Source: Guillardia theta CCMP2712 (taxonomy: Eukaryota; Protista; Cryptophyta). From it: a stretch of 64,000 bases of DNA. The position numbers and the translations under genes were made by a program. Below, in pieces: positions 3,601-15,963 of this stretch (position 1 is its first letter; every line of letters starts with the position of its first letter). The notes below the pieces were generated by a model. That model was given only the letters and a program-made list of their open reading frames with translations, had not been told where the DNA came from and did no database searches. Where the stretch lies: assembly GCF_000315625.1 (NCBI RefSeq), contig NW_005434633.1:1-64000 (forward strand), given 5' to 3'.

Positions 3601-4234
3601 CGAAATGAGGTTCGCCATTCCTCCCTCCCTCCTCCCTCCCCCCTTCCCTCTTGTTCCTCCTCCTCGTCATCGTCGTCATCCTCCTCGTCCCCATGCTGTC
3701 CTGAGGTCAACCAGTGATTCTCTGTCGCAGCTTCACCTGCAGATCGCTCTCACTGACTGCATCTACTGCAACTTCAAGCGCGTCCACACGTTTGTCTCCA
3801 GGTGCCATGCTGCGCCTTCGACCTCCTCCCTCTCTTTCTCTCCTGCTCCTCCTCCTCCTCCCTCCCCTCACTTGTTTCCCTCCTCCTCCTCCCTCCCCTC
3901 TCTTGTTTCCCTGCCCTTCTCCTCTCCGCATCGCTCTCCTCATCTGTCCGCAGGATCACTTCCATCTATCGCATCACCGTTGGAACTCTGGGAGCAATTC
4001 TCTTCGTCCTCACTGTTGTAAGTTTTGCCTCAACATGCTCCATCCCGTCCTCCTTCCCTCTCGCTTTCTTTTTCTCTCAACTCCTCCCTTCTATCCTCGC
4101 TCTCCCCTCCCCTCCCCTCCTTCCCCTCTCCCTCCCCTTCCTTTGTTGTTCTCTCCCTTATCTCTCTATCTCTCATGTTGTTGCAGGCGCTCCTCGTCCT
4201 CTGGAGCAAGACGGTTACCCTCAAGCATGTCTGA
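612..4234 (+). CDS. Ionotropic glutamate receptor-like channel with K+ selectivity filter and N-terminal six-EF-hand ectodomain (5 exons: 612-2393, 2440-3609, 3731-3801, 3954-4017, 4187-4234)
   Basis: Signal peptide MKACAPFISALCLLLIQGVNC. EF-hand loops DTDGNGRLSYQE, DFNNDFMVSMQE, DLDGSGRVSMEE, DKNGDGVLSPEE, DMDKNGVISFLE, DLNMDRMIDSEE. S1-like ERLPPFV...GYAVQMF...YRFV. M1, pore LWFSIVTVTSVGYGDKAPRT, M3, S2 IKSVYDL...VGV, M4. GT-AG phase-0 intron 2394-2439 joins the 596-aa and 427-aa ORFs in frame. Confidence 0.88.
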
Positions 4235-4291
4235 ACTTTGTTTGATTTAATTGAAAATTCAAATTGGCGAGCTAAAACCGCCACACGCTTC

Positions 4292-5735
4292 CTATCTTAC
4301 AGGACCGAAGGAGGGCGACACCATCGGCGATGCTGGCGACAAGCTCGGCGTGTCCATCTGACGAGACAGAACGTTTCCTTGCGAGTCCTCCCAAATCGTC
4401 TGCATACAAATTGAGGAGGAGAGGAGGGAGACAGCAGAAGGAGGGAGGGAGGAAGGAGGAAGACAGCAGGAGGAGTGAGGAAGAAGCAGCATTGGAATCT
4501 GCAGCTTGTCACCTTGACATTGGGCACGAGCTCAAGTGCGATGAACCAGGCGCGAACCTCGTTGAGAGTGTCGGCGCTCACCCGGTAGGTTCGGCTCTTG
4601 GACACTTCAGGGGAAGTCTGGGAGCAAGTCAGGGGAGGAGGAGGAGGAGGAGGAGGAGGAGGAGGAGGAGGAGGGGGAGGGGGGGGAGGTTGAAAATGAA
4701 GGCAAGGGAGCTCGAGGGCAGGAGAACAAGGCGGTGGGAAGAGAAGAGGAGAGGTGGAGAGAGGGGATGGTAAGAGGAAGGGGAGTGCAGTGGAAGAGGT
4801 GATGGGTGGGGAGCAGGTACAACCTTGACGGCGAAGACAGTGCCGGTAACGACCTTCACTTCAGCCCCGTTGAGGTTGATCTTCTCGATCCACCGGCCCA
4901 GGATCGCGTCCTCCTTGCTCTCCGCGTTCTGCAGCATGTAGGCGAAGTCCCCGTGCCCCGTCCCTTCCTTGTCATTGAGGAGCGGCACAATAGCATAGTA
5001 CTTGGGGAACCATTCCTTCTTCTTGGTATCCAGCAGGTGGAGAGTCCCCTCCTGCAACGCCCCCGGTACACGGTCCCCCAGCCGCTTCCTCTCTGCCGAG
5101 CCCGGCAGCCCCCCCGACGCCTCGCGCACCATCCCCGTCCCCTGCTCCTTCCCCTCCAGGTAGGTCGCCAGCGCCAGCGCCCCGTTGCTCCGAGCGATCT
5201 GCAACGCTGTCTCCCTGCGCTGTTGACGGCCCTCGGGTCGCATCCATGCAGGAGGAGAAGCTCGACCAGCCTCGGCCAGTCCTCGTGCATCCCTTCCTCC
5301 GACGAGCACGTCGACAAGAAGTGAAGCACGTCGTCCCCGAAGGCCGTCTTCGCCGTCACCAGCAGGCTCGCCTGCTCCTTCGCAGCGTCCAGCAGCATCT
5401 TGAGGATGGTAGCATACTCTCCCCCTTCCTCTCGCCCAGCCACCGTCACATGCAGCGAGTTCAGCCCCTGCCCGTCAGTGGCAGCGGGAGAAGCGCCTGC
5501 GTCCAGAAGGCACCGGACGATGTCCGAGCGGCCGAGGGAGCAGGAGATCATGAGGACGGTGAAATTGTCCTGATTTCTCTCGTCCAGATCTGCTCCCTCC
5601 GCAATCGCCTTCTTCATCACCTGCTTCCAGTCAGCACGACCCGCAGCGACAGCAATAGAAGAAGAAAAGTAGGACAGGAGGGAGAAGAGAAGCAGCAGCA
5701 GGAGAGGAGGAGGAGGAGGAGAGAAAGAGAAACAG

Positions 5736-5788
<53 letters not shown>

Positions 5789-8700
5789 ACAGCAGCAGCT
5801 CACCTCCACATCCCCAGCCTCCAGCGCATTGTGCAAGCTCGGCCTATTTCCCTTCGGTGGGGAGGCAGGAGGAGCTCCTGTTGGAGCAGCCGCAGCTGCC
5901 GGAGGCGAAGGAGGAAGAGGAGCAGCCGCCGATGGCGGAGATGCAGAAAGAGGAGCGGGAGGGAGGGGAGCCGACTCGACAACTGGATGCTGATGATGCG
6001 GAGGAGGGGATTGCGCCGAAGTCGCCGTGTGCGTGCTTTGCTGCACCTCCTCCTCCTCCCCGTACGTGACTTGACCCTCCAAGATCTGGTCGTAGTGAGT
6101 GATGAACAAGGTCAGCATGCGCTGGGCTGGCTCCAGGTGGGTGTTGGTCAGGAACGGCGTCATCCTATGGGCCAGCCAGGTAGCGTCGTACGCGCCGCCA
6201 CAGTAGCCCTGGATGAGGGAGAGAAGCCAGGCGACCTGAACGAAGAGCTCCAGGTACTCTCCCTCCTCCGTCAACAGGTTCTGCACCGCATCCGACAGGC
6301 TCTTGATCCTACCCTGCAGTGTCACTCCTCCTGCCGCGCCCTCGGACTGCGACAAGAATTCGGGGGAGATGAGCGGGCGAGGCAGACCGCGGAGGAGCCT
6401 GGCGAGGATGTGGACAAGCATGGAGGGCTCCCCCACGAGCGACGCGACGTCCTCCACCTCCCTCCTGCAGCAGAGCTCCAGCACCTCCCTGATCTTGTTT
6501 GCCTTGTGCGCCTCCAGTCTGCCCTCCATGTCCTTCATCACGGTGCTGCGCCACGTCAGCACCTGAGAAGTCAGCTGGACTCCGCCCTCGGCGTCCAGCT
6601 GCAGCTTCTCGTGGACCGCAGCGATGCACGAGCGGATGAGGTCGAACGAGTAGCTCTCCTCGAGTCTCCGCAGCTGCTGCACCATCTCCTCCTCCCTCTC
6701 ATCCAACACAGCACCACTCTGCGCTGCTGATGCACTCTTTCCTACAACGGTGCGAACAGAGGCTGGAGCAGGAGCAGGAGCTGGAACAGGGGTGAATGCA
6801 GAGCCAGACGCGGGGGAGTGAGCAACAGCTGGAGCTGCAGCTGGGGTGATCCCCACAGCAGGATCTTGAGCCCTAGAGCTATGTAGCGACATCATCGGAG
6901 TAGCATTGGAGGACACACGTTGCTCGATCTCCTCTTGCTCCTGCCGGCTCCACTGCGCTCCGACGCCTGCCATGATGGACTTGAACTCGCTTCCCATGGC
7001 CAGCAGGTCGACGGGGGAGCCGTCCTCGACCACCCTGCGCTGCTTCATCACCACGACGCGGTCAAACTGGGAGCAGCGCATAGGAGTTGAGCTGAGGTGA
7101 AGCACGGTAACGTTCCTCTGCCCGTCGAAGAGCGAGTCCAGTCGGTTCAGCTCCTCCATGGACAGCACGCAAGTCGCCTCCTCCAGCACCAGGACCTGTG
7201 GGCGGCGCAGGAGGACCCGAGCCAGGCCCATCAGGAAGCGCTGGCGGGAGTCGGAGGCCGTGAGATCGTTGTTGACGAAGCTGGGAGGCAGCTGCTGGTG
7301 CTCGCGGGGGACGACGCCGACGAACTTGAGGAGGGTGAGCAGGTTGTGCTGCCCGTCCTGGGTGCTCATCATCTCCTCCGTGGGGTCCACGTTGAAGGTC
7401 AGTGAGCCCTTGAACAGCAGCGGCTCCCTTGGCACCAGCCCTACGTGCTTCCGCACGGCCTCGATCGTGACTGAGATGCTGTCCGCTCCTCCGAGGAACA
7501 GAGACCCCTGGATGATGGGCGACGTCTTGAGCAGGCAGCGGGCAAGGGCCTTGAGGTCTTCGGACCTGCGGGAGAGGACGAGGGCGCGGCTGCCGGCCCG
7601 CACGTCCAGCGTCATGCCATCCAGCTCCTTCATGCCGTACTCGTCGATCGTCGTGACGTCCTGGAACAGGATGGAGCCAGCCTCTTGGGTGCTCCAGGAC
7701 TGCGGGAGGACTTGAAGGGCTCGGGAGAGCGGCTTCTCCTCGAGAGGGAAGAACTCGTCTGCCTCCAAGACCCGCCGGATGAAAAGGTGGAAGACAACGG
7801 CCGACTCGAGGAAGCAGAAAGTCATCCAGGGCACGTAGAGGACCAGCTGGACTGCAGACGCCAGCACGAGCCCAGCAAGAGAAAAGCCGTTGATGTCAGT
7901 CAGCGCCCCCATCTGCTTCAAGAGCAGGAGGACGATCAGGGCAGCGGAGAGGAGGAGGCAGCCGAACAAGCCGGAGCACAAGACAGTCCAGGACTGCAGG
8001 CATGCGGCAGCCTTCCTGCTGCTGGTGTACTTGTCAAGAGCGTCCTGCATCGAGAGCAGGGCCGAGCGGTGGCTTCGGCTGAGAGTGATCTGCGTGAGAG
8101 AATCTGCTGTGGAAGAGCACAAGGCCTCCAGATGTGTCCGATACTCCGTGGCTGCCGTGCAGACAGCGCGAAGTCCGTTCATGCCCCTCGTCGTGTTCCA
8201 GATCCATCCGCATGCGCTGATGAGAGGAGCGAAGAAGAAGAGGAAGACGAGCTTCGAGTCTCCCCATGAGGTGGCCTGAGCATGGCCCGTGAAGGAGCAG
8301 ATGGCGTAGGTGAGGAGGACGAGGGAGGAGAGGACGGATAGCATGGAGTGGAAGCTGTGGATCAGGAAGAAGGGGTACTCCTCCACTGATTCTTGAACGT
8401 TCCTGCACGTGAGTTGGAACGTCAGGACTTGCACGACGGCCTTGAGCTCCGTCGGGCCCTTTTGAAACCAACCCAGGAACCTGTTCTGCAAGCGAACGCT
8501 CGCGCTGCTCGCTACCAGGACGAACCAGATCATGTCGCCGGCGAAGAGAAGGATGTACGCAAAGCCGGAGCAAGCAATGAGCACGATAGCGATGTTTTCG
8601 GGCTTTGTGTTGAGAATGTTCAGCCCGCTGAAGTTGATGTCCATGTGCAGGAGGATCCAGTTCTGCAGACCGCACAGCAAGTGGCCAGCGAGGGAGACGA

Positions 8701-11700
8701 GGAAGAAGATGAAAAGAGAGATGTACTCCTGAGACAGCCAGCAGTAGACGGCCCACAGCCACTGAGACCCTGACTCGCTTATCACCAGCGGAGGATGCAG
8801 TACCCCAACGTCAGGAACCAACCAAGACGGAGTGCAAGCCATGTCGGCCAGGTCGACGATGTCAAGCCGCTGCTTCTCCTGCAACTCGTCCGCCCTCATG
8901 CGCAGCTCGGCAAGCGAGGCAAGCGCCTCGACGCTGCTGATGGTGTCCAGTCCCTGCTTGCTGGCCGAGACCAGGAGGAAGGAGTTACAGTGAGCCAGGT
9001 AGGGAGAGGACAGGCTCAGGGACACAACCACTGTCTTGGCCTTCAACTGCCCGAGAATGCAGCTGTGCCACACAAGGTCGCGAGTCTGATCGTCGAGCCT
9101 CTCCAGGATCTCGTCGAAGATGTACACGTCAGCATCCTTGTACACGGCACGCGCCAGCGCGATGCAGCTCGCAAACGTCTCGTCGAGAGCGACCGACGTG
9201 CTCTTGCCTATCACCGTCTCATCCCCCATCGGCAGCATCTGCAGGAAGCGAACGAGACCCGAGCAGGTCACGGCCTTGGTGTACATGTTGTGGTCCAACG
9301 GGAGCCCGAAGAGAACATTCTGCTTGATCGAGCCGGCCAGCAGCTGCGGCTGTCTGCCGCAGAAGATCACTTCCCCATACACGTGCATGTATCCGGTCTG
9401 CCCGTGCCGCGGCATCCACCCGACCATGGCACTGAGCACACTCGACTTGCCGCTCTTGGTGGTACCGGAGACTCCGACGAGGTGTCCTCGGCGAATGTCA
9501 AAGTTGATGGTGTCGGTCATGCAGCCGAGGTAGAAGTTGTGGTCTATGGAGCTCTTGTTGGGCCAGAAGAACATGCTCTGCTTGGCGCTGACTGCGAGGT
9601 CCTCCTGCCCCTTGTTCTTGTGGTCGTCTGCCTTAGGCCTCCCCTCGTGGTTGAGAAACTGAACTATGCGCGAGAGCGAGTTTTGGTAGTTGTGAGACGA
9701 TCGGGAGATGCTCGAGTAGACGTAGAGCGGTACTTGCATGCAGGCTGAGATACACAGGACCATGAAGACCTCGAAGTTTGACACCGACCGTTTCTCAGCG
9801 TACACTATGAAGAGCATCGACGTAGAGGTGACGAAGGCCGCGACGACAGGGAGGAAAGACGAGAAGAGAAACTCGATCGCGCTAGTGACGGAAGAGGAGA
9901 AGATGTCGTTTTCGATGTACGAGGTCAAGTTGGCGATGAACACGTTCTGCAGCTGTAGGACCTTGGCATCCATCCAGTCCTTGAGCACTCCCAGCATCTC
10001 GACAAGCCTGGGGGTCCTCAGCAAGTCCCTCTGCTGCTGCTTCCTGCTGTTGACGAGCAAGATCGAGAGCAAGTGGGCGAGCATGAGCAACGCAAGGGCC
10101 GCCAACCCGCCGATCGCTCCCACCTCTACCTCACGGGCAATCAGCGCTATGGCGATGGCGCAGATAATGATTGAGGCCTGAAGGAGGAAGCGAGCTCTGG
10201 TAGTGGCTGAAACAGTCGAGACGTCGTTGAGAAGCAGCTCAGCCAGGTTGCAGGCGTTAATCTTCTCGTGGTCTGACTGGCTGGCCCCGCAGAACTGCTT
10301 GGAGTGGAGGGCCTTGTTGTAGAGGAAGGACATGAGGCCGCTAGCAGCATCCGTCGACGAGTTGCTGACGCTGCACGAGTAGGAGTGAGCGACGAGGAGC
10401 TGCAGGATGAAGCACACAACACAGCCGACGAGGAGGAGAATCCCCTCCTCAAGGCCCCTCTTAGCCCGCGCCCCCTGGTTGAAGCAGAGCTCTGACGTCG
10501 ATCTGGACGCGAAAGCTTCGCAGTCGATCAACCACAGGTAGAACTCTCGGATGCACATCACGATGCCCACAAGCGTGAGCCCCATCCACAGGACCATCCG
10601 CGCTAAGACGCTCAAACTCCTTATGGTCCCTCCTGTCATGATGTACTTGACGTCCTCCTCCTCCACCTGTGCCCCTTGACTCGTCCTCCTGTTCCACAGG
10701 ATCTCGTGGACCCGCTCGTGAGCGACTGCCGAGCTGCTCCAGAAGTTGTTCCTCGACATGCACTCCTGCAACGACGCGCTGCCTCCCCTCAGCGAGCTGA
10801 GCGCGGCTCCAACCCACGTCCACGTCCACATGTCCATCCCCAACGAGTAGTCCACCTTCATGCTGGGCAGGAAGCTGGTGAATCTCTCAGAGGCCTTGAC
10901 GCTCCTGACCACCACATCGTCCAGCTGATCGACTCCCTCAGTGAAGATCCGACGGGGGGGGATGTCGTCTTGCAGCTGAGCAGAGGGAGAATGCACTGGC
11001 GCTGCCTGCCCCGCCCGCTCCACTTCCTCCACCTGGTCCGCAGGCATAGCTCGAGCAGGAGCAGGAGGAAGCTCTTCACCCTGCTCTGCCTCGAACGCAT
11101 CCACCTTCAAGATCTTCACCACCTTCTTCATTGAGAAAGTCTGCCAGATGCTGCTGTTTGAATCTTCGAGCATGCCGATCAAGATGTCAGCAAGCTCCTC
11201 GCACCCAACGCTGCTTCCTCCCCCCGGCACGAGGTTCACGTGAGTGATGATGCTTCCCCGGTGAACAGAGATCACTTCCACCCGCTCGATGGGGATGAAG
11301 AGAAGCGACGCCAGATCGCTGCGCAGGAGAGTCTTGAAGGCGTTGTACTCGTCCAGAGAGGTGATGACGTCATCATACTCCTCTCCCAGCACCATCTCAA
11401 TGCCCACAGGCTTGTCTTCTTGCCTTTGATCGGCTTCTTTCTCCGGCATCTCATCAGGTTCCCCAGCAACCGGTGCGGAACCTTGCTCCTCCTCTTCCAC
11501 TCGAGAGGTGAACGGTGAGAGGACGGTGAACCTGCTCTGAGGGATCTGGTCGGGCATGTTTTCAGCGCTGGCGTGCTCAAAGGACATGTCCATATTGGAC
11601 TCGTCGAGTGCTGTCTTGCTCAAGACGCTCTCTTCCAGCACGTTCGACTCGGAATCCATCACGTCTGGGTTCAAGTTCTCACCAAGCACGTCCTCCTCCT

Positions 11701-14048
11701 TCGTTCCAGGCTCGTCCCAACCCTCGTCGTTAAACTGTACAGCAAATCTTTCAGCTGCTTCGCCTCCCTCCTCCTTGCGCTCTTGGTGACTATCGATGAT
11801 TCCGCCGAGGTCGTAAGATTCCAGTTCAGGCTCCTCTTTCTTCGCTCCGGCCTCCTCCTCCTTCTCTTTCCTGGGTGAGTTAAAAAGCTCCAACATCTCC
11901 AAGACACTCTTCCCTTCAAGATCGGGAGGGAGTGCTGGCTCATCGTCATCCTGTTGGAGACTGTCGACGACCAAAGGCTGCCTCCCTCCCAAATCATCCT
12001 CTTCCATCTGGTCGAAGACTGGAGACGAAGTCTGCTTCTCCTCTCCGTGCACCACTCTATCCTGTCTCACTCCCTCCTCCTCCACTTCCTCCTCCTCTTT
12101 CTTCATCTCGACCTCGGGCTCCCGTTCATCATGCTCCCGCTCGATGGTCTCTGCAACGGGCTCGACGTCCTGCCTGTCGTGTCCCTTTGCATCAGGAAAG
12201 GCTCCCACATTCTCGCGACTCTCAGCAGCAGCCTCCTCATCATCACCAGCTCCTGTAGAGTTGCTCCTTACCCGCCGGAGGATGACTCCGAAGGGACTCT
12301 TCAGACGTTCCTCCAGCGCTGAGGAGGAAGATCAGGACGGACCAAAGGAGAGCAGAGACAAGGACTGAGGCAGGAAGGACAAACAAGCAGGAGAATCATA
12401 ACAAACACATGGAGACATGATCAGCAGCAAGAAATCACCTTTAGCCTCCTCAGCACTCTCGCTCCTGACAGGCGACAGCTGGTCCTCTGGTGGGCTCCTC
12501 TCCATCTTCGCCTCGTCAACCGCCATCGGAGATCTCTTCTCCATGCTAAAATTCTGCGAGTCGTCGGCCGACGAAGTCCTGTATGTCTCCTGTCTCATCT
12601 TCTCCTCTCTCTGCACGTGGGCTTGCAGAGCTGCCTTAGGAGCTGAGAAGTGCGGCCCTTGCGCTCGCGGCTGGACAGGCTGGGGAACCACCCCCTTCTG
12701 CTCCATCGCTCGGAACATGGCCATCCTGTCAGAGATACTGACCTGCTCCTCCCTCTTGGACTTCAAGACAGGCACAGGCTCAGCCTCCTCCTGCTCGTCC
12801 AAGTGGACCTCTTCAGCTGCTTCCGGCAACGGGCGGAGGCTGTGGAGGACGTTGGAGGAGGTGCCATCGAGAGAGAAGGCAGGGCACTTGCAAGCTTCCG
12901 ATGCCCTGCGGGTGCTCATGGCTCTGTGCAACCTGCTCATGGACTCTGAGACTTGTTGGATCAAGGAGTCAGCGAGGTCAGAGGGGAAGGGGCCGAACCC
13001 TTCCCTCTCGTGCGGCAGGATGTTCATCTGAGCCACGATGCTGAACTTCTTGTCAACACTCGACCTCCCCCGCTGCAGCTTCACGATCTGAATGCGAGTG
13101 AGAGGGACGCGGAGCGCAAACGCCACGTCCTCCTTGATCAGCTTCTCCATCTGCTGCCTCTTCGCAGGGCTCGAGAGCAAGCTGTCATGGTTCTCCTCCA
13201 GGGTCAGCAAGACCCCAACAGTCTCTGACTGGCTGCTGGGCAACAACACCGTTTGCTTCTCCGGCTGACTCGCAGGCTCTTTGACGTCAACCTTGAGGTC
13301 GTCCAGAGAGAGCTCATCGTGGCGATCGTGCTTGTGAGGGTGAAGAGATTCCTCGCTCTTGCTTGCCTGAACTGCATGTCAGCAAAGGAGGAAGACTGAA
13401 GGGGAGGGAAGAAGCGAACAGGGGCCAGGGAGGGACTTACACTCATCACTTTGGTGAACATCTCCGTCAGCTCCTTGACGTGAGACTCTGACTGGAGGTG
13501 CTCGAGCTCGGGGTCAACTTGAGACGAGCTGAGCTTTTGATCGAAGAATGCGGAGTCTTCGGCGTCATCCCCATTCTCCGACGGGTAAGTCCTCGCCGTC
13601 GCAGTGATCTCCATGTCCTCCACGCTCTGCTCTAGAACGCTGCAACAGAATGAGCAAGACAGCACATCATCTTCACAGCCTACCTGGGGTCCGCGGTGGG
13701 CTCCGTAGGTCTGTCGTCTCCTCCCTGTGGCTCGAGGGGCTCCTGGAGCTGTAGCGAGCTGGGAATGACCTCGTTGTGGGTATCAAGGGCAGAGTTCAAG
13801 GGGGAAGCCGAGGAAGGGATGGTGAGCTTGGGAACGGCTGAAGCTCCCCGGGGAGCAGCAAGGTGAGTTGTCACATGATCGTTCTGGCCGATTGGAGATG
13901 GCGAGCGGTGGCGCTCGACGAGTCCCAACGGGTCATGTGTCTTGCTGTGACCGTTCTGAAACGTGGTGACGAAAGGATCGACCGATGCGAAGATCGGAGA
14001 CTGAGAGTTCGCCCTCCTCTGTGAGTCGTCGTGCCTCCTAACTTCCGT
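4292..14048 (-). CDS. Giant multidomain protein: low-complexity N-terminus, 2 SEA-like repeats, degenerate ABCC/MRP-type transporter (TMD1-NBD1-TMD2-NBD2), RhoGAP-like domain, Pro-rich linker, ankyrin repeats, PH domain; 5' end probably further upstream
   Basis: 2450-aa ORF 4856-12208 plus spliced exons (introns 4400-4512, 4618-4823, 5621-5803, about 12319-12438, 14049-14094). ABCC motifs GTTKSGKSS, ALARAVYKDADVYIFDE, LARVLLRRPQVLVLEEAT. RhoGAP-like LARLLRGLPRPLI...LFITHYDQI. Ankyrin GADLDERNQDNFTVLMISC...GRSDIVRCLLDAGA. PH EGTLHLLDTKKKEW...RTYRVSADTLNEVRAWF. One-base frameshift at 5213-5215. Confidence 0.85.
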
Positions 14049-14094
14049 CTGAAGCGGATGACGTCAGCAGCAAGACAGCAAACATGTTCCTTAC

Positions 14095-15963
14095 CCCTTG
14101 CCGCTCTCTCTCTTTCGCCGACAACAAGATGTCAGGTTCCAACAAAGTGACCTGGAACGGTGAGTCAGAGAGAAAGCAATGCAAAAACAATCTCAAGTGT
14201 TACTTTGCTCGGTTTCTGGCCATGGATGGTGTCACTGTACAACAGAGGACCAAGTTAGCAGGCCTTCAAGAGGAGATTATCTCATCACATGGTGGGGGCA
14301 ACGTGGCTCGGCTCTGTCGGGATTGATTCCGCATTGAGGCGAGATTTTAGTGTAGATGGGGCGTTTCTGTTCGGCGCCAAACTTGATTCTCTAAGGGGCG
14401 ACGACGACATTAAAGAAAGATCATGCTTGATTTCCTGCAAGATCGTCATATGGCGCAGTCATGCCTAAGAGGCAATCTTCGAGACCTGTACAATTTGATA
14501 CAGGCTACTCAACTCTGCAATTCCAGCGTCCTTCGACTGACAGGAAATCGTTTCAGTCGCGCACCATCACGACTTCCTCCTTTCTCACATCTCCGGTAAG
14601 GTAACTGGAGGTCGACAAGGAGGATGTGTCGTTCCTCCTCGATGCCACGTCATTGCTACTGGAAGCAAACTGGTGAGACCTGCAATATAGGAGCAACTGC
14701 CGTCAGATTCTTCATAACGTGCAACCCGTTGCGCTCCAAACAATCGTTGCTGGGCACTCCATTTACCTGTTCAATCTTATCGACGACTCTCGAAGATCGT
14801 CAAGCAGATTTCCTTGTAAGATACTGGAAGAGACATCTCAGTCAGCCAGACACTGAAAACTCCTCAGAAAGCAGCTACTTAGAGTCCTTTGCACCAAACG
14901 GATTGGAACGGCTAGTGCTTAACCCATTCGTTTCTTTCCGTGCTGTCGCGCTCTGGGAGAAGGAACAAGAGGCATCACAACGAGCATCATGAAATCAAAG
15001 ACACACAAAGATTTCAGGGGGCCTTCTGATATTCACGGGCTCTACGATTCCCCTGTCAACTCGTCTCAGTCATTCAAATGCCTCAAGTGCCACAGACCTG
15101 TTAGAGTATTCTTTCGGTCTGTAACTTGACCCTGAAGTTTGCCGCTGAGCTGGTCCAGCGTCATGGATAGAAGTAGGTGGAGAATGCTTGGGTGGAGAAT
15201 CAAACTTGTCGAGCGCCTACGGGCTGATAAGAAGAAGGACGAGACAAGACTGGCAACATTTGACCTTCAGACGCTCTTCCAGTAATGAAAGGCGGGATTG
15301 GAGATCATCCACAGAGTGTTCGTACATGGCGGTGTATAGCTGAGCGCGCTCTCTGCTACTATCGGGAAAGCTCCAATGTCCTCATCAGCGTCTCTCGTAC
15401 AACTCAAAGTCGACTCTCCTTGGATCAGAATCGCCCAGGATTTCCCTTCTGCTTCATCTCCGCTTCACCTTGTGGGAGCTATGGCCCCTAGAAGGGCATG
15501 CCCAAGGACTGTCCCCTTGCTATCGAAGCAAGAGTTCGAATGTGCTGTTTTCTCAACCAGAGAATCTTGTTTCATACAGCATCCCCCCTGGCAACGTAGC
15601 TCAGTCAGCATGACAACCTGTGTGGACAAGGGGTTATATCCCCTGCGTTCAAAGCTTATGCTCTTTGATCAACATCATGCATGAAGCTACAACGTATGTA
15701 GCTGGTCAGGACATGTCCATCAGGCTCGCGGCCTCAAAGGGACAGTCACGCCAGTCTGATCGGCAATTGCATCAACCCCAGCGAGTAAACCGCTACCTTG
15801 TAACACTATCCACGATCTTCTCCAAGTCTGCATTTGCTTCTTTTATCTCCGTACCTCTTGCTATGGCTCTTAACTGTTTCTCCCTCACTCTCTCAACAAC
15901 CGATCTCCTAACTGTCCCTGATGTTTTACCATCCTCGCCTGCCTGCTCAGCCCGCATGAACAT
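14095..15963 (-). CDS. Series of short exons starting MFMRAEQAGEDG...; 5' extension of the ABCC fusion gene or a separate hypothetical gene
   Basis: Open, coiled-coil-like exon 15963-15797 (RVREKQLRAIARGTEIKEANADLEKIVDSVT) followed by a GT donor. Repeated CTGAC...AG intron signatures on the minus strand. Full splice path not resolved. Confidence 0.4.

Follow-up and report, generated by a model that had tools for sequence, protein, structure and literature searches.

The subject of this analysis is one gene on the minus strand of a 64,000-nucleotide stretch of the Guillardia theta CCMP2712 genome (contig NW_005434633.1, positions 1 to 64,000; the whole stretch is called the window below). The gene lies at about 14449-4292, is spliced and expressed, and has about nine exons coding for about 3,088 residues. 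From the N-terminus to the C-terminus its product contains an acidic N-terminal region, an ATP-binding cassette (ABC) core of subfamily C (ABCC) composed of L0, transmembrane domain 1 (TMD1), nucleotide-binding domain 1 (NBD1), TMD2 and NBD2, a RhoGAP-fold domain, ankyrin repeats and a PH-like domain. Our analysis suggests, with a probability of about 0.6, that this protein is a transporter turned membrane-anchored scaffold or receptor, which would no longer hydrolyse ATP, may still bind it, and would carry a GTPase-binding pseudo-GAP along with lipid and protein contacts. That the protein no longer transports, and that it serves as a scaffold or receptor, we infer from the evidence described here. 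All coordinates are those of the window, and all features are on the minus strand unless stated.

Pfam analysis of the open frame identified two ABC_tran stretches and ankyrin repeats. Comparison with the sequences of solved structures using phmmer revealed ABCC2, MRP1, YCF1 and ABCC4 at E-values of 1e-46 to 1e-39, followed by CFTR (1e-30), SUR (1e-25) and ABCB1 (1e-23). All named matches to the ABC core in the protein-database search were ABCC proteins, and the best match was a transcript protein from Hanusia phi. By sequence similarity, the core is closer to ABC subfamily C than to other ABC subfamilies. Hydropathy analysis revealed twelve peaks, forming two groups of six transmembrane helices, and the order TMD1-NBD1-TMD2-NBD2 is collinear with ABCC structures. 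The L0-like region and TMD1 with its six helices occupy 9629-10771 (phmmer alignment to ABCC2 from residue 255, and hydropathy), NBD1 occupies 8939-9571 (Pfam ABC_tran and motif alignment), TMD2 with its six helices occupies 7769-8776 (hydropathy and alignment to ABCC structures) and NBD2 occupies 6959-7711 (motif alignment).

The ATP-site motifs were read from an alignment of the core with eight canonical ABCCs, and all motif states quoted in an earlier, sequence-only reading of this DNA were found. In NBD1, the A-loop Trp (an invariant column), Walker A (GTTKSGKS, matching G-x4-GKS) and Walker B (YIFDE) are kept; the Q-loop Gln is replaced by Arg, the signature LSGGQ is replaced by LDETF and the H-loop His is missing. 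In NBD2, Walker A is lost (SRRSEDLK), the Q-loop Gln is again Arg, the signature LSVGQ is replaced by ASDSR, Walker B reads VLVLEEAT and the H-loop His is missing. Both composite ATP sites consequently lack the signature, the Q-loop Gln and the H-loop His, and the normally hydrolytic ABCC site also lacks its P-loop. An ABCC consensus site is not formed, as NBD2 contributes SRRSEDLK and no His and NBD1 contributes LDETF as signature. GxVGSGK[ST], LSGGQ and GRTGAGKS are intact in two canonical ABCC paralogs encoded by the Guillardia genome, and the motif decay is therefore specific to this gene, whose nearest ABC paralog in that genome is 28% identical. The description of the protein as a doubly dead ABCC in the sequence-only reading is appropriate for the hydrolysis motifs and not for nucleotide binding, since NBD1 keeps the A-loop Trp, the Walker A Lys and the Walker B Asp.

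The Hanusia phi transcript protein (P0001) was found to be the same protein, with 77% identity over the ABC core and the same motif states, except that its NBD1 Walker B ends in D-D. P0001 reads through a retained in-frame intron (a Cys/Ser/Leu-rich segment at residues ~675-712) and terminates within a second retained intron, which interrupts the first ankyrin repeat; the mature protein is therefore not represented by these 2,870 amino acids. A profile of the GAP-like domain run over 1.84 billion representative proteins identified eight relatives, all of them environmental. The most complete is P0122, encoded by an uninterrupted gene for 3,056 amino acids on independent contigs from two samples, in which the N-terminal domain, ABC core, GAP-like domain, ankyrins and PH domain are all present. 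P0127 (2,090 amino acids) comprises the ABC core and the GAP-like domain. Since no ankyrin or PH domain is detectable within 6 kb downstream of it, the ABC-RhoGAP-like fusion alone is common to all relatives. P0121 and P0130 span NBD2 to the first ankyrin, and P0124 and P0221-P0223 span the GAP-like domain to the PH domain. A word search with P0124 found only four further fragments, one of them an annexin chimera, and a word search with the NBD2-to-GAP alignment was dominated by generic ABC ATPases and did not recover the known relatives. Comparison of the P0122 contig with the window revealed no synteny.

Three side observations concern members of this family. P0132 (NCBI MGB1606594.1), a member of the P0124 cluster covering the ankyrin-PH end, is assigned in the database to a Promethearchaeia archaeon metagenome-assembled genome and most likely comes from a mis-binned eukaryotic contig. 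P0220, an environmental protein of 505 amino acids, has annexin repeats joined to the last ankyrin and PH domain of this family and is probably a chimeric assembly. P0123 (548 amino acids, from Logan) begins with its own Met, its N-terminus is coiled-coil-like and the fragment contains no ABC part; it is also the closest member to canonical RhoGAP, and a stand-alone form of the GAP-like domain, as in P0123, may exist.

Comparison of the ATP sites between lineages revealed that no family member retains the NBD1 signature or an H-loop His in either NBD, while the state of the P-loops differs. Guillardia and Hanusia keep the NBD1 P-loop and have lost that of NBD2 (SRRSEDLK), and their NBD2 Walker B ends in E-E. 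P0122 shows the reverse, with the NBD1 P-loop Lys lost (GCS), the NBD2 P-loop kept (GGANSGKT) and an NBD2 Walker B ending in D-E. P0127 keeps the P-loops of both NBD1 and NBD2 (GAGGAGKT in the latter) and also has D-E in NBD2 Walker B. In P0130, which does not cover NBD1, the NBD2 P-loop has lost its Lys (GRRGSGVE) and Walker B ends in E-D. At least one P-loop Lys survives in each of the three lineages in which both NBDs can be read. The extent of decay is lineage-specific, because P0122 and P0127 keep an intact NBD2 Walker A and Walker B (D-E), and these patterns suggest that hydrolysis was probably lost early and that the P-loops then decayed independently. The sequence-only reading had named orthologs with intact catalytic motifs as evidence that would speak against it; none of the relatives compared (Hanusia, P0122, P0127 and P0130) has a complete catalytic site.

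These data also bear on the view that the protein is still an ATP-dependent ABCC, be it a pump, a CFTR-like gated channel or a SUR-like regulator, working through a non-canonical NBD1 site, with the C-terminal domains serving to localise or regulate it. We consider this unlikely. The A-loop Trp and the Walker A GKS of NBD1 are kept, as is the D-E of its Walker B in Guillardia, the TMDs are 74-76% conserved with Hanusia, about equal to the NBDs, and the relatives retain a P-loop in at least one NBD, all of which speak in its favour. They are outweighed, in our view, by the loss of both signatures, both Q-loop Gln residues and both H-loop His residues in all family members seen, by the destroyed NBD2 Walker A of Guillardia and Hanusia, and by the residue that follows the NBD1 Walker B Asp, which is Glu in Guillardia but Asp in Hanusia, Gly in P0122 and Asn in P0127. 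Mutations of the signature and of the H-loop abolish hydrolysis in ABC proteins, as established in ABC biochemistry.

The RhoGAP-fold domain (6050-6712) follows the ABC core without an intron, as the sequence-only reading had proposed: it lies in the same exon as NBD2. An AlphaFold2 model of the domain computed from nine sequences had a mean predicted local distance difference test score (pLDDT) of 86.8 and a predicted template-modelling score (pTM) of 0.86. The top Foldseek matches of this model were all RhoGAP/BH domains at a probability of 1.00. VIA-align gave the ARAP3 RhoGAP domain as best match (Z 17.8, root-mean-square deviation 2.9 Å over 177 residues); 44 RhoGAP/BH entries were found at Z 13.0-17.8, and the next unrelated fold was at Z 5.0. 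Support from sequence was specific but weaker than that from structure: the family profile matched four RhoGAP structures among the PDB sequences at E 1.2e-3 to 0.06, and hhalign comparison with six Guillardia RhoGAP domains gave a P-value of 6.4e-5, against 0.31 for the PH control. The all-helical RhoGAP fold of the domain is confirmed at the level of the predicted model. In other sequence searches, the Pfam RhoGAP model gave no match to the Guillardia domain even at E 10 and reached 22.3 bits on the relative P0123, under the cut-off of 24.5, and a two-sequence profile of the domain found nothing relevant among the PDB sequences. A model computed from Guillardia and Hanusia only (pLDDT 55.7) was discarded in favour of the one from nine sequences, together with its meaningless Foldseek matches to 14-3-3 proteins (TM-score ~0.25).

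Analysis of the catalytic positions revealed that the Lys of the LLK motif is replaced by Ala in Guillardia and by Ala, Val or Leu across the family, and that the Asn of the NLA motif is replaced by Trp in Guillardia and by Trp, Ser, Val, Ala or Glu across the family. Both positions are also mismatched in the hidden Markov model alignment to DLC1. When the sequences were aligned by hand, with the helix after the finger as anchor, Ala fell at the canonical Arg-finger position in all members. The finger loop contains a 21-residue insertion with a predicted helix within it, and in this enlarged loop a conserved Arg (WRS/YRF/YRD, domain residue 55) is found 13 residues upstream of the aligned finger position.

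The conserved Arg raises the prospect of an active GAP with a relocated Arg finger, in other words a membrane-anchored Rho-GAP controlled by the ABC body. The RhoGAP fold match is excellent and five of the six family members have the Arg preceded by an aromatic residue (WRS, YRF, YRD) in the canonical finger loop; its distance from the aligned finger, its location in the predicted helix of the insertion, the replacement of both the stabilising Lys and the GTPase-contacting Asn in all members, and the failure of Pfam RhoGAP to recognise the Guillardia domain make an active enzyme quite improbable. On the reading preferred here, that of a scaffold or receptor, the GAP-like domain is most likely a binding module: like the RhoGAP-like domains of OCRL and p85, it would associate with a Rho-type GTPase but not stimulate it.

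The GAP-like domain is single-copy in the Guillardia genome, where a search for paralogs found none. At least six canonical RhoGAP genes are present in Guillardia, one of them with a GILRVAGS finger, and because of these genes Rho-type signalling is probably present in this organism. The gene with the intact GILRVAGS finger (L006 / L017, G000:C102:250774-251439) is a canonical PH-RhoGAP gene. Another Guillardia RhoGAP-domain gene (L007, on C17) has IFLKYG at the finger position and may be a second pseudo-GAP.

Continuity of the mRNA was analysed in four RNA runs compared with positions 4250-10249 of the window, with assembled contigs from three different studies. The RNA contigs cover 10249-5805, 5621-4824, 4617-4513 and 4399-4250 with contiguous record coordinates, and three GT..AG introns are therefore removed from the mRNA. 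These are an intron of 183 nucleotides at 5621-5803 with a (TGC)n repeat (spliced out in contigs of runs X1, X2 and X4), an intron of 206 nucleotides at 4618-4823 with a (CCT)n repeat (RNA contigs and splice ends) and an intron of 113 nucleotides at 4400-4512 (joint in X2 and X4, and splice ends). An in-frame poly-Cys run corresponds to the (TGC)n repeat within the first of these introns and is not coding. The last coding exon is 4292-4399, with the stop codon at 4292-4294 (RNA contigs and splice ends). A 2,332-nucleotide joint seen in run X1 was taken as spurious, since one side has 20 letters and lies in a low-complexity stretch. Spliced RNA contigs from the three studies are unbroken from NBD1 to the stop codon, and no transcript splitting the ABC part from the GAP-ankyrin-PH part, another outcome named beforehand as refuting, was found.

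One base is absent from the reference between 5212 and 5213 (C on the plus strand), and is present at full depth in every RNA contig of three runs. Its absence produces an apparent frameshift within the last ankyrin repeat. This frameshift of one nucleotide had been predicted beforehand from the broken ankyrin consensus (...AVNSAG / ETALQIA...) and was confirmed by the RNA contigs; with the missing C restored, the frame continues from the main exon through the ankyrins and the PH-like domain to the stop codon. The missing C reflects either an error in the assembly or a difference between strains, and would break any gene model based on the reference.

A 14.7-kb RNA contig reaches 4,082 letters 5' of 10249 and is long enough for the whole coding sequence; the 4,082-letter extension is about the length needed to reach the 5' untranslated region (UTR) above the ATG at 14449 after removal of the five upstream introns. 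This contig was not used as proof of a single transcript because it also crosses the convergent neighbour gene. The neighbour (4234-4294 and beyond) is an EF-hand/glutamate-receptor-like channel gene ending about 58 nucleotides from the stop codon of the gene analysed here, and the contig across both genes suggests overlapping 3' UTRs. The raw-read run X19 contributed only nine reads, from 6% of the run, which indicates low expression.

The four or five ankyrin repeats are located at 5150-5620, with the first starting in the main exon at 5845-5804 (Pfam Ank, E 1.8e-9). The ankyrin-PH part was searched as separate exon pieces and through the orthologs. Pfam analysis of 5213-5620 gave Ank at 37.8 bits (cut-off 21.1), Ank_2 at 36.1 bits (cut-off 27.3) and Ank_5 also above its cut-off, so that the ankyrin repeats of the sequence-only reading are secure. 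The PH domain it had named is probable: similarity to true PH domains was found with profiles, and the Pfam scores stay below the cut-off. The PH-like domain consists of a first part with strands beta1-6 at 4824-5057 (55% identity to P0122; hhalign) and a second part at 4513-4617 with the last strand and a C-terminal helix containing a conserved Trp (RNA contigs, P0122 and hhalign). Pfam PH gave no match to the Guillardia exon pieces even at E 10, and a PDB sequence search with the PH piece found nothing relevant; on the C-terminus of P0122 Pfam PH scored 20.9 bits (cut-off 25.1, E 5.5e-4) over profile positions 4-101 of 105. Comparison by hhalign with ten Guillardia PH domains gave a P-value of 2.4e-4 over 80 columns (0.55 for the RhoGAP-profile control), with both the Trp after beta1 and the Trp of the C-terminal helix aligned. 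Atlas feature matches for the domain were PH families at 0.82-0.88. Overall, these comparisons suggest that the C-terminal domain, which has a basic beta1-beta2 loop, is probably a PH domain. A tail motif W-E-x-x-x-G-x-x-LS at the C-terminus is common to the Guillardia protein, P0122 and P0221.

Comparison of Guillardia with Hanusia revealed 74-85% identity in the folded domains and 51-58% in the linkers. NBD2 is the best-conserved ABC module (84.5%), followed by NBD1 (78%) and the TMDs (74-76%), and the GAP-like domain is 81% identical. Open frames of at least 2,870 amino acids are kept in both species. Two variants of the P0122 gene differ by 38 synonymous and 17 nonsynonymous changes, giving a ratio of nonsynonymous to synonymous rates (dN/dS) of 0.147 from small counts, and the nonsynonymous changes all fall outside the two NBDs, the GAP-like domain, the ankyrins and the PH domain. 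A dN/dS near 1, also named earlier as refuting, was not observed in this pair, and in Guillardia versus Hanusia the domains are conserved more than the linkers. The gene is under purifying selection.

Considering these results together with the transcripts, a decaying pseudogene, or an assembly or annotation artefact joining two genes, is highly improbable. Such an origin would account for the reference frameshift at 5212/5213, the degenerate motifs and the very low raw RNA depth in X19. However, none of the RNA contigs carries the frameshift, splicing yields a continuous mRNA, the ABC and GAP-like parts lie together in a single exon, the Hanusia frame of 2,870 amino acids and the ortholog of 3,056 amino acids on independent contigs have the same order, and the domains are conserved far above the linkers, with a dN/dS of 0.15.

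For the scaffold or receptor that we favour, the following mechanism is proposed. An ATP-driven transport cycle would be impossible because neither composite site is complete: both are without signature, Q-loop Gln and H-loop His, and the usual catalytic site is without Walker A. ATP may still bind NBD1 as a structural or regulatory ligand, since the A-loop Trp, P-loop Lys and Walker B Asp are kept there. The ankyrin repeats and the PH-like domain with its basic beta1-beta2 loop would add protein and acidic-lipid contacts to the GTPase-binding GAP-like domain. Most likely, the ABCC body would position or conformationally gate a small-GTPase and lipid signalling module at the membrane.

A more specific version, which we regard as tentative and rather less than an even chance, is that the family represents a new class of ABC-derived receptors in which occupancy of the one surviving P-loop by ATP, binding of a ligand, or both would switch the attached module of Rho-GTPase-binding pseudo-GAP, ankyrins and PH domain. 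A membrane or metabolite signal would then be coupled directly to small-GTPase and phosphoinositide signalling, and the retention of the P-loop in NBD1 or NBD2 according to lineage would mean that binding of one ATP is the selected function.

Several observations weigh against the scaffold or receptor interpretation. The loss of ATP hydrolysis is inferred from motifs alone, and the D-E of Walker B in Guillardia NBD1 provides a potential catalytic Glu (Asp in Hanusia). The intact NBD2 Walker A and Walker B of P0122 and P0127 may indicate residual activity in some lineages. No ankyrin or PH domain was found within 6 kb downstream of P0127, and the PH scores in Pfam stay under the cut-off. Finally, of the three GAP motifs described as seemingly lost in the sequence-only reading, the Lys and the Asn are replaced family-wide, while the Arg finger is apparently lost as judged by sequence alignment only, with the conserved Arg 55 present in the enlarged finger loop.

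The remaining features concern the 5' part of the gene. The longest open frame on the minus strand is 4856-12208 (2,450 codons). The sequence-only reading described an uninterrupted frame of more than 2300 codons; the frame is present but is partly read-through, and the actual main exon is about 12318-5804 (5804-12318, ~2,171 codons; open frame, with RNA contigs of three runs contiguous over 5805-10249). It encodes an acidic linker, the second copy of an N-terminal domain, the ABC core, the RhoGAP-fold domain, a Pro-rich linker and the first ankyrin half-repeat. The linker (5846-6049) is Pro/Ala-rich and 54% identical to that of Hanusia. The gene start, previously set at 14048, is more probably upstream at the ATG at 14447-14449 (MTILQEIKHDL...), which is the first Met after in-frame stops and just downstream of the point where homology to P0001 begins. 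Five upstream exons coding for the N-terminal region (approximately 12457-14449) were identified by tblastn with P0001 and by GT..AG pairs that keep the frame and match Hanusia. Their approximate, homology-based bounds are 14449-14289, 14191-14095, 14048-13684, 13639-13437 and 13371-12457; as these exons were placed from Hanusia homology and GT..AG pairs only, the bounds are approximate, and the second intron of 46 nucleotides is the least certain. An in-frame intron at approximately 12319-12456 separates them from the main exon: it contains a stop in Guillardia, is retained in the Hanusia transcript, and conservation restarts after it at ...LEERLKSPFGV.

Two copies of a conserved domain of about 100 amino acids sit in the cytosolic N-terminal extension, and this domain is found in the ortholog P0122 too. 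Copy 1 (12890-13219, ~110 amino acids) is nearly identical in Hanusia and resembles copy 2; it gave a weak Pfam FAZ1_cons match (E 0.0097) and an Atlas SEA-domain neighbour at 0.83. Copy 2 (11093-11400) is 82% identical between Guillardia and Hanusia and has 25% identity to Hanusia copy 1 over 201 columns (E 2e-11).

A search of a limited literature collection found no paper describing such a protein. The core resembles ABCC2, MRP1 and YCF1 in the order L0-TMD1-NBD1-TMD2-NBD2, in the 6+6 transmembrane helices, in E-values down to 1e-46, in the NBD1 A-loop Trp and in the D-D or D-E of NBD1 Walker B. Unlike in these transporters, the consensus site has been destroyed by changes in the NBD1 signature and in Walker A and the H-loop of NBD2, and the degenerate site is without signature, Q-loop Gln and H-loop His; identity to canonical ABCCs is 19-22%, and the protein is extended by about 1,100 amino acids N-terminally and about 700 C-terminally. 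SUR1/SUR2 (ABCC8/9) and CFTR (ABCC7) likewise use an ABCC scaffold for a non-pumping purpose, and nucleotide occupancy may act as a signal in the present protein as well. One hydrolytic consensus site survives in SUR and CFTR, as do both Walker A motifs, whereas the protein described here has no complete site, and its signalling domains are covalently fused rather than supplied by a channel partner.

The GAP-like domain shares its fold with OCRL/INPP5B and the BH domain of PI3K p85 (model Z 13-14 for p85 BH and OCRL), and in both cases the catalytic residues are missing; by analogy with those proteins, GTPase binding rather than activation is likely. It differs from them by its fusion to a polytopic ABC protein, by the 21-residue insertion in the finger loop and by having no sequence-level family assignment. 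ARAP proteins also combine RhoGAP, ankyrin and PH modules in one polypeptide, and the best structural match is to ARAP3. In ARAPs, which are soluble or peripheral, the ArfGAP and RhoGAP domains are active; in the Guillardia protein the module is attached to an integral ABC core and the GAP looks inactive. A further analogy, for the way in which the protein may operate, is the apicomplexan and ciliate protein in which a P4-ATPase-like domain is fused to guanylate cyclase; here too a transporter-like membrane body of a protist is joined to a signalling domain, although the transporter superfamily is unrelated and the signalling output is different.

An ABC exporter is generally considered to require a minimum of one competent ATPase site, and even the repurposed CFTR and SUR still keep one. 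An expressed, spliced and conserved full-length ABCC without a complete site at either position would be a natural experiment on the capacities of the ABC fold in the absence of hydrolysis, and the fused pseudo-RhoGAP, ankyrin and PH module suggests what its output would be, namely binding of a Rho-type GTPase and of acidic lipids. The family is rare, with eight representative clusters among 1.84 billion proteins, its only named relative is a cryptophyte, and it may mark cryptophyte-specific cell biology.

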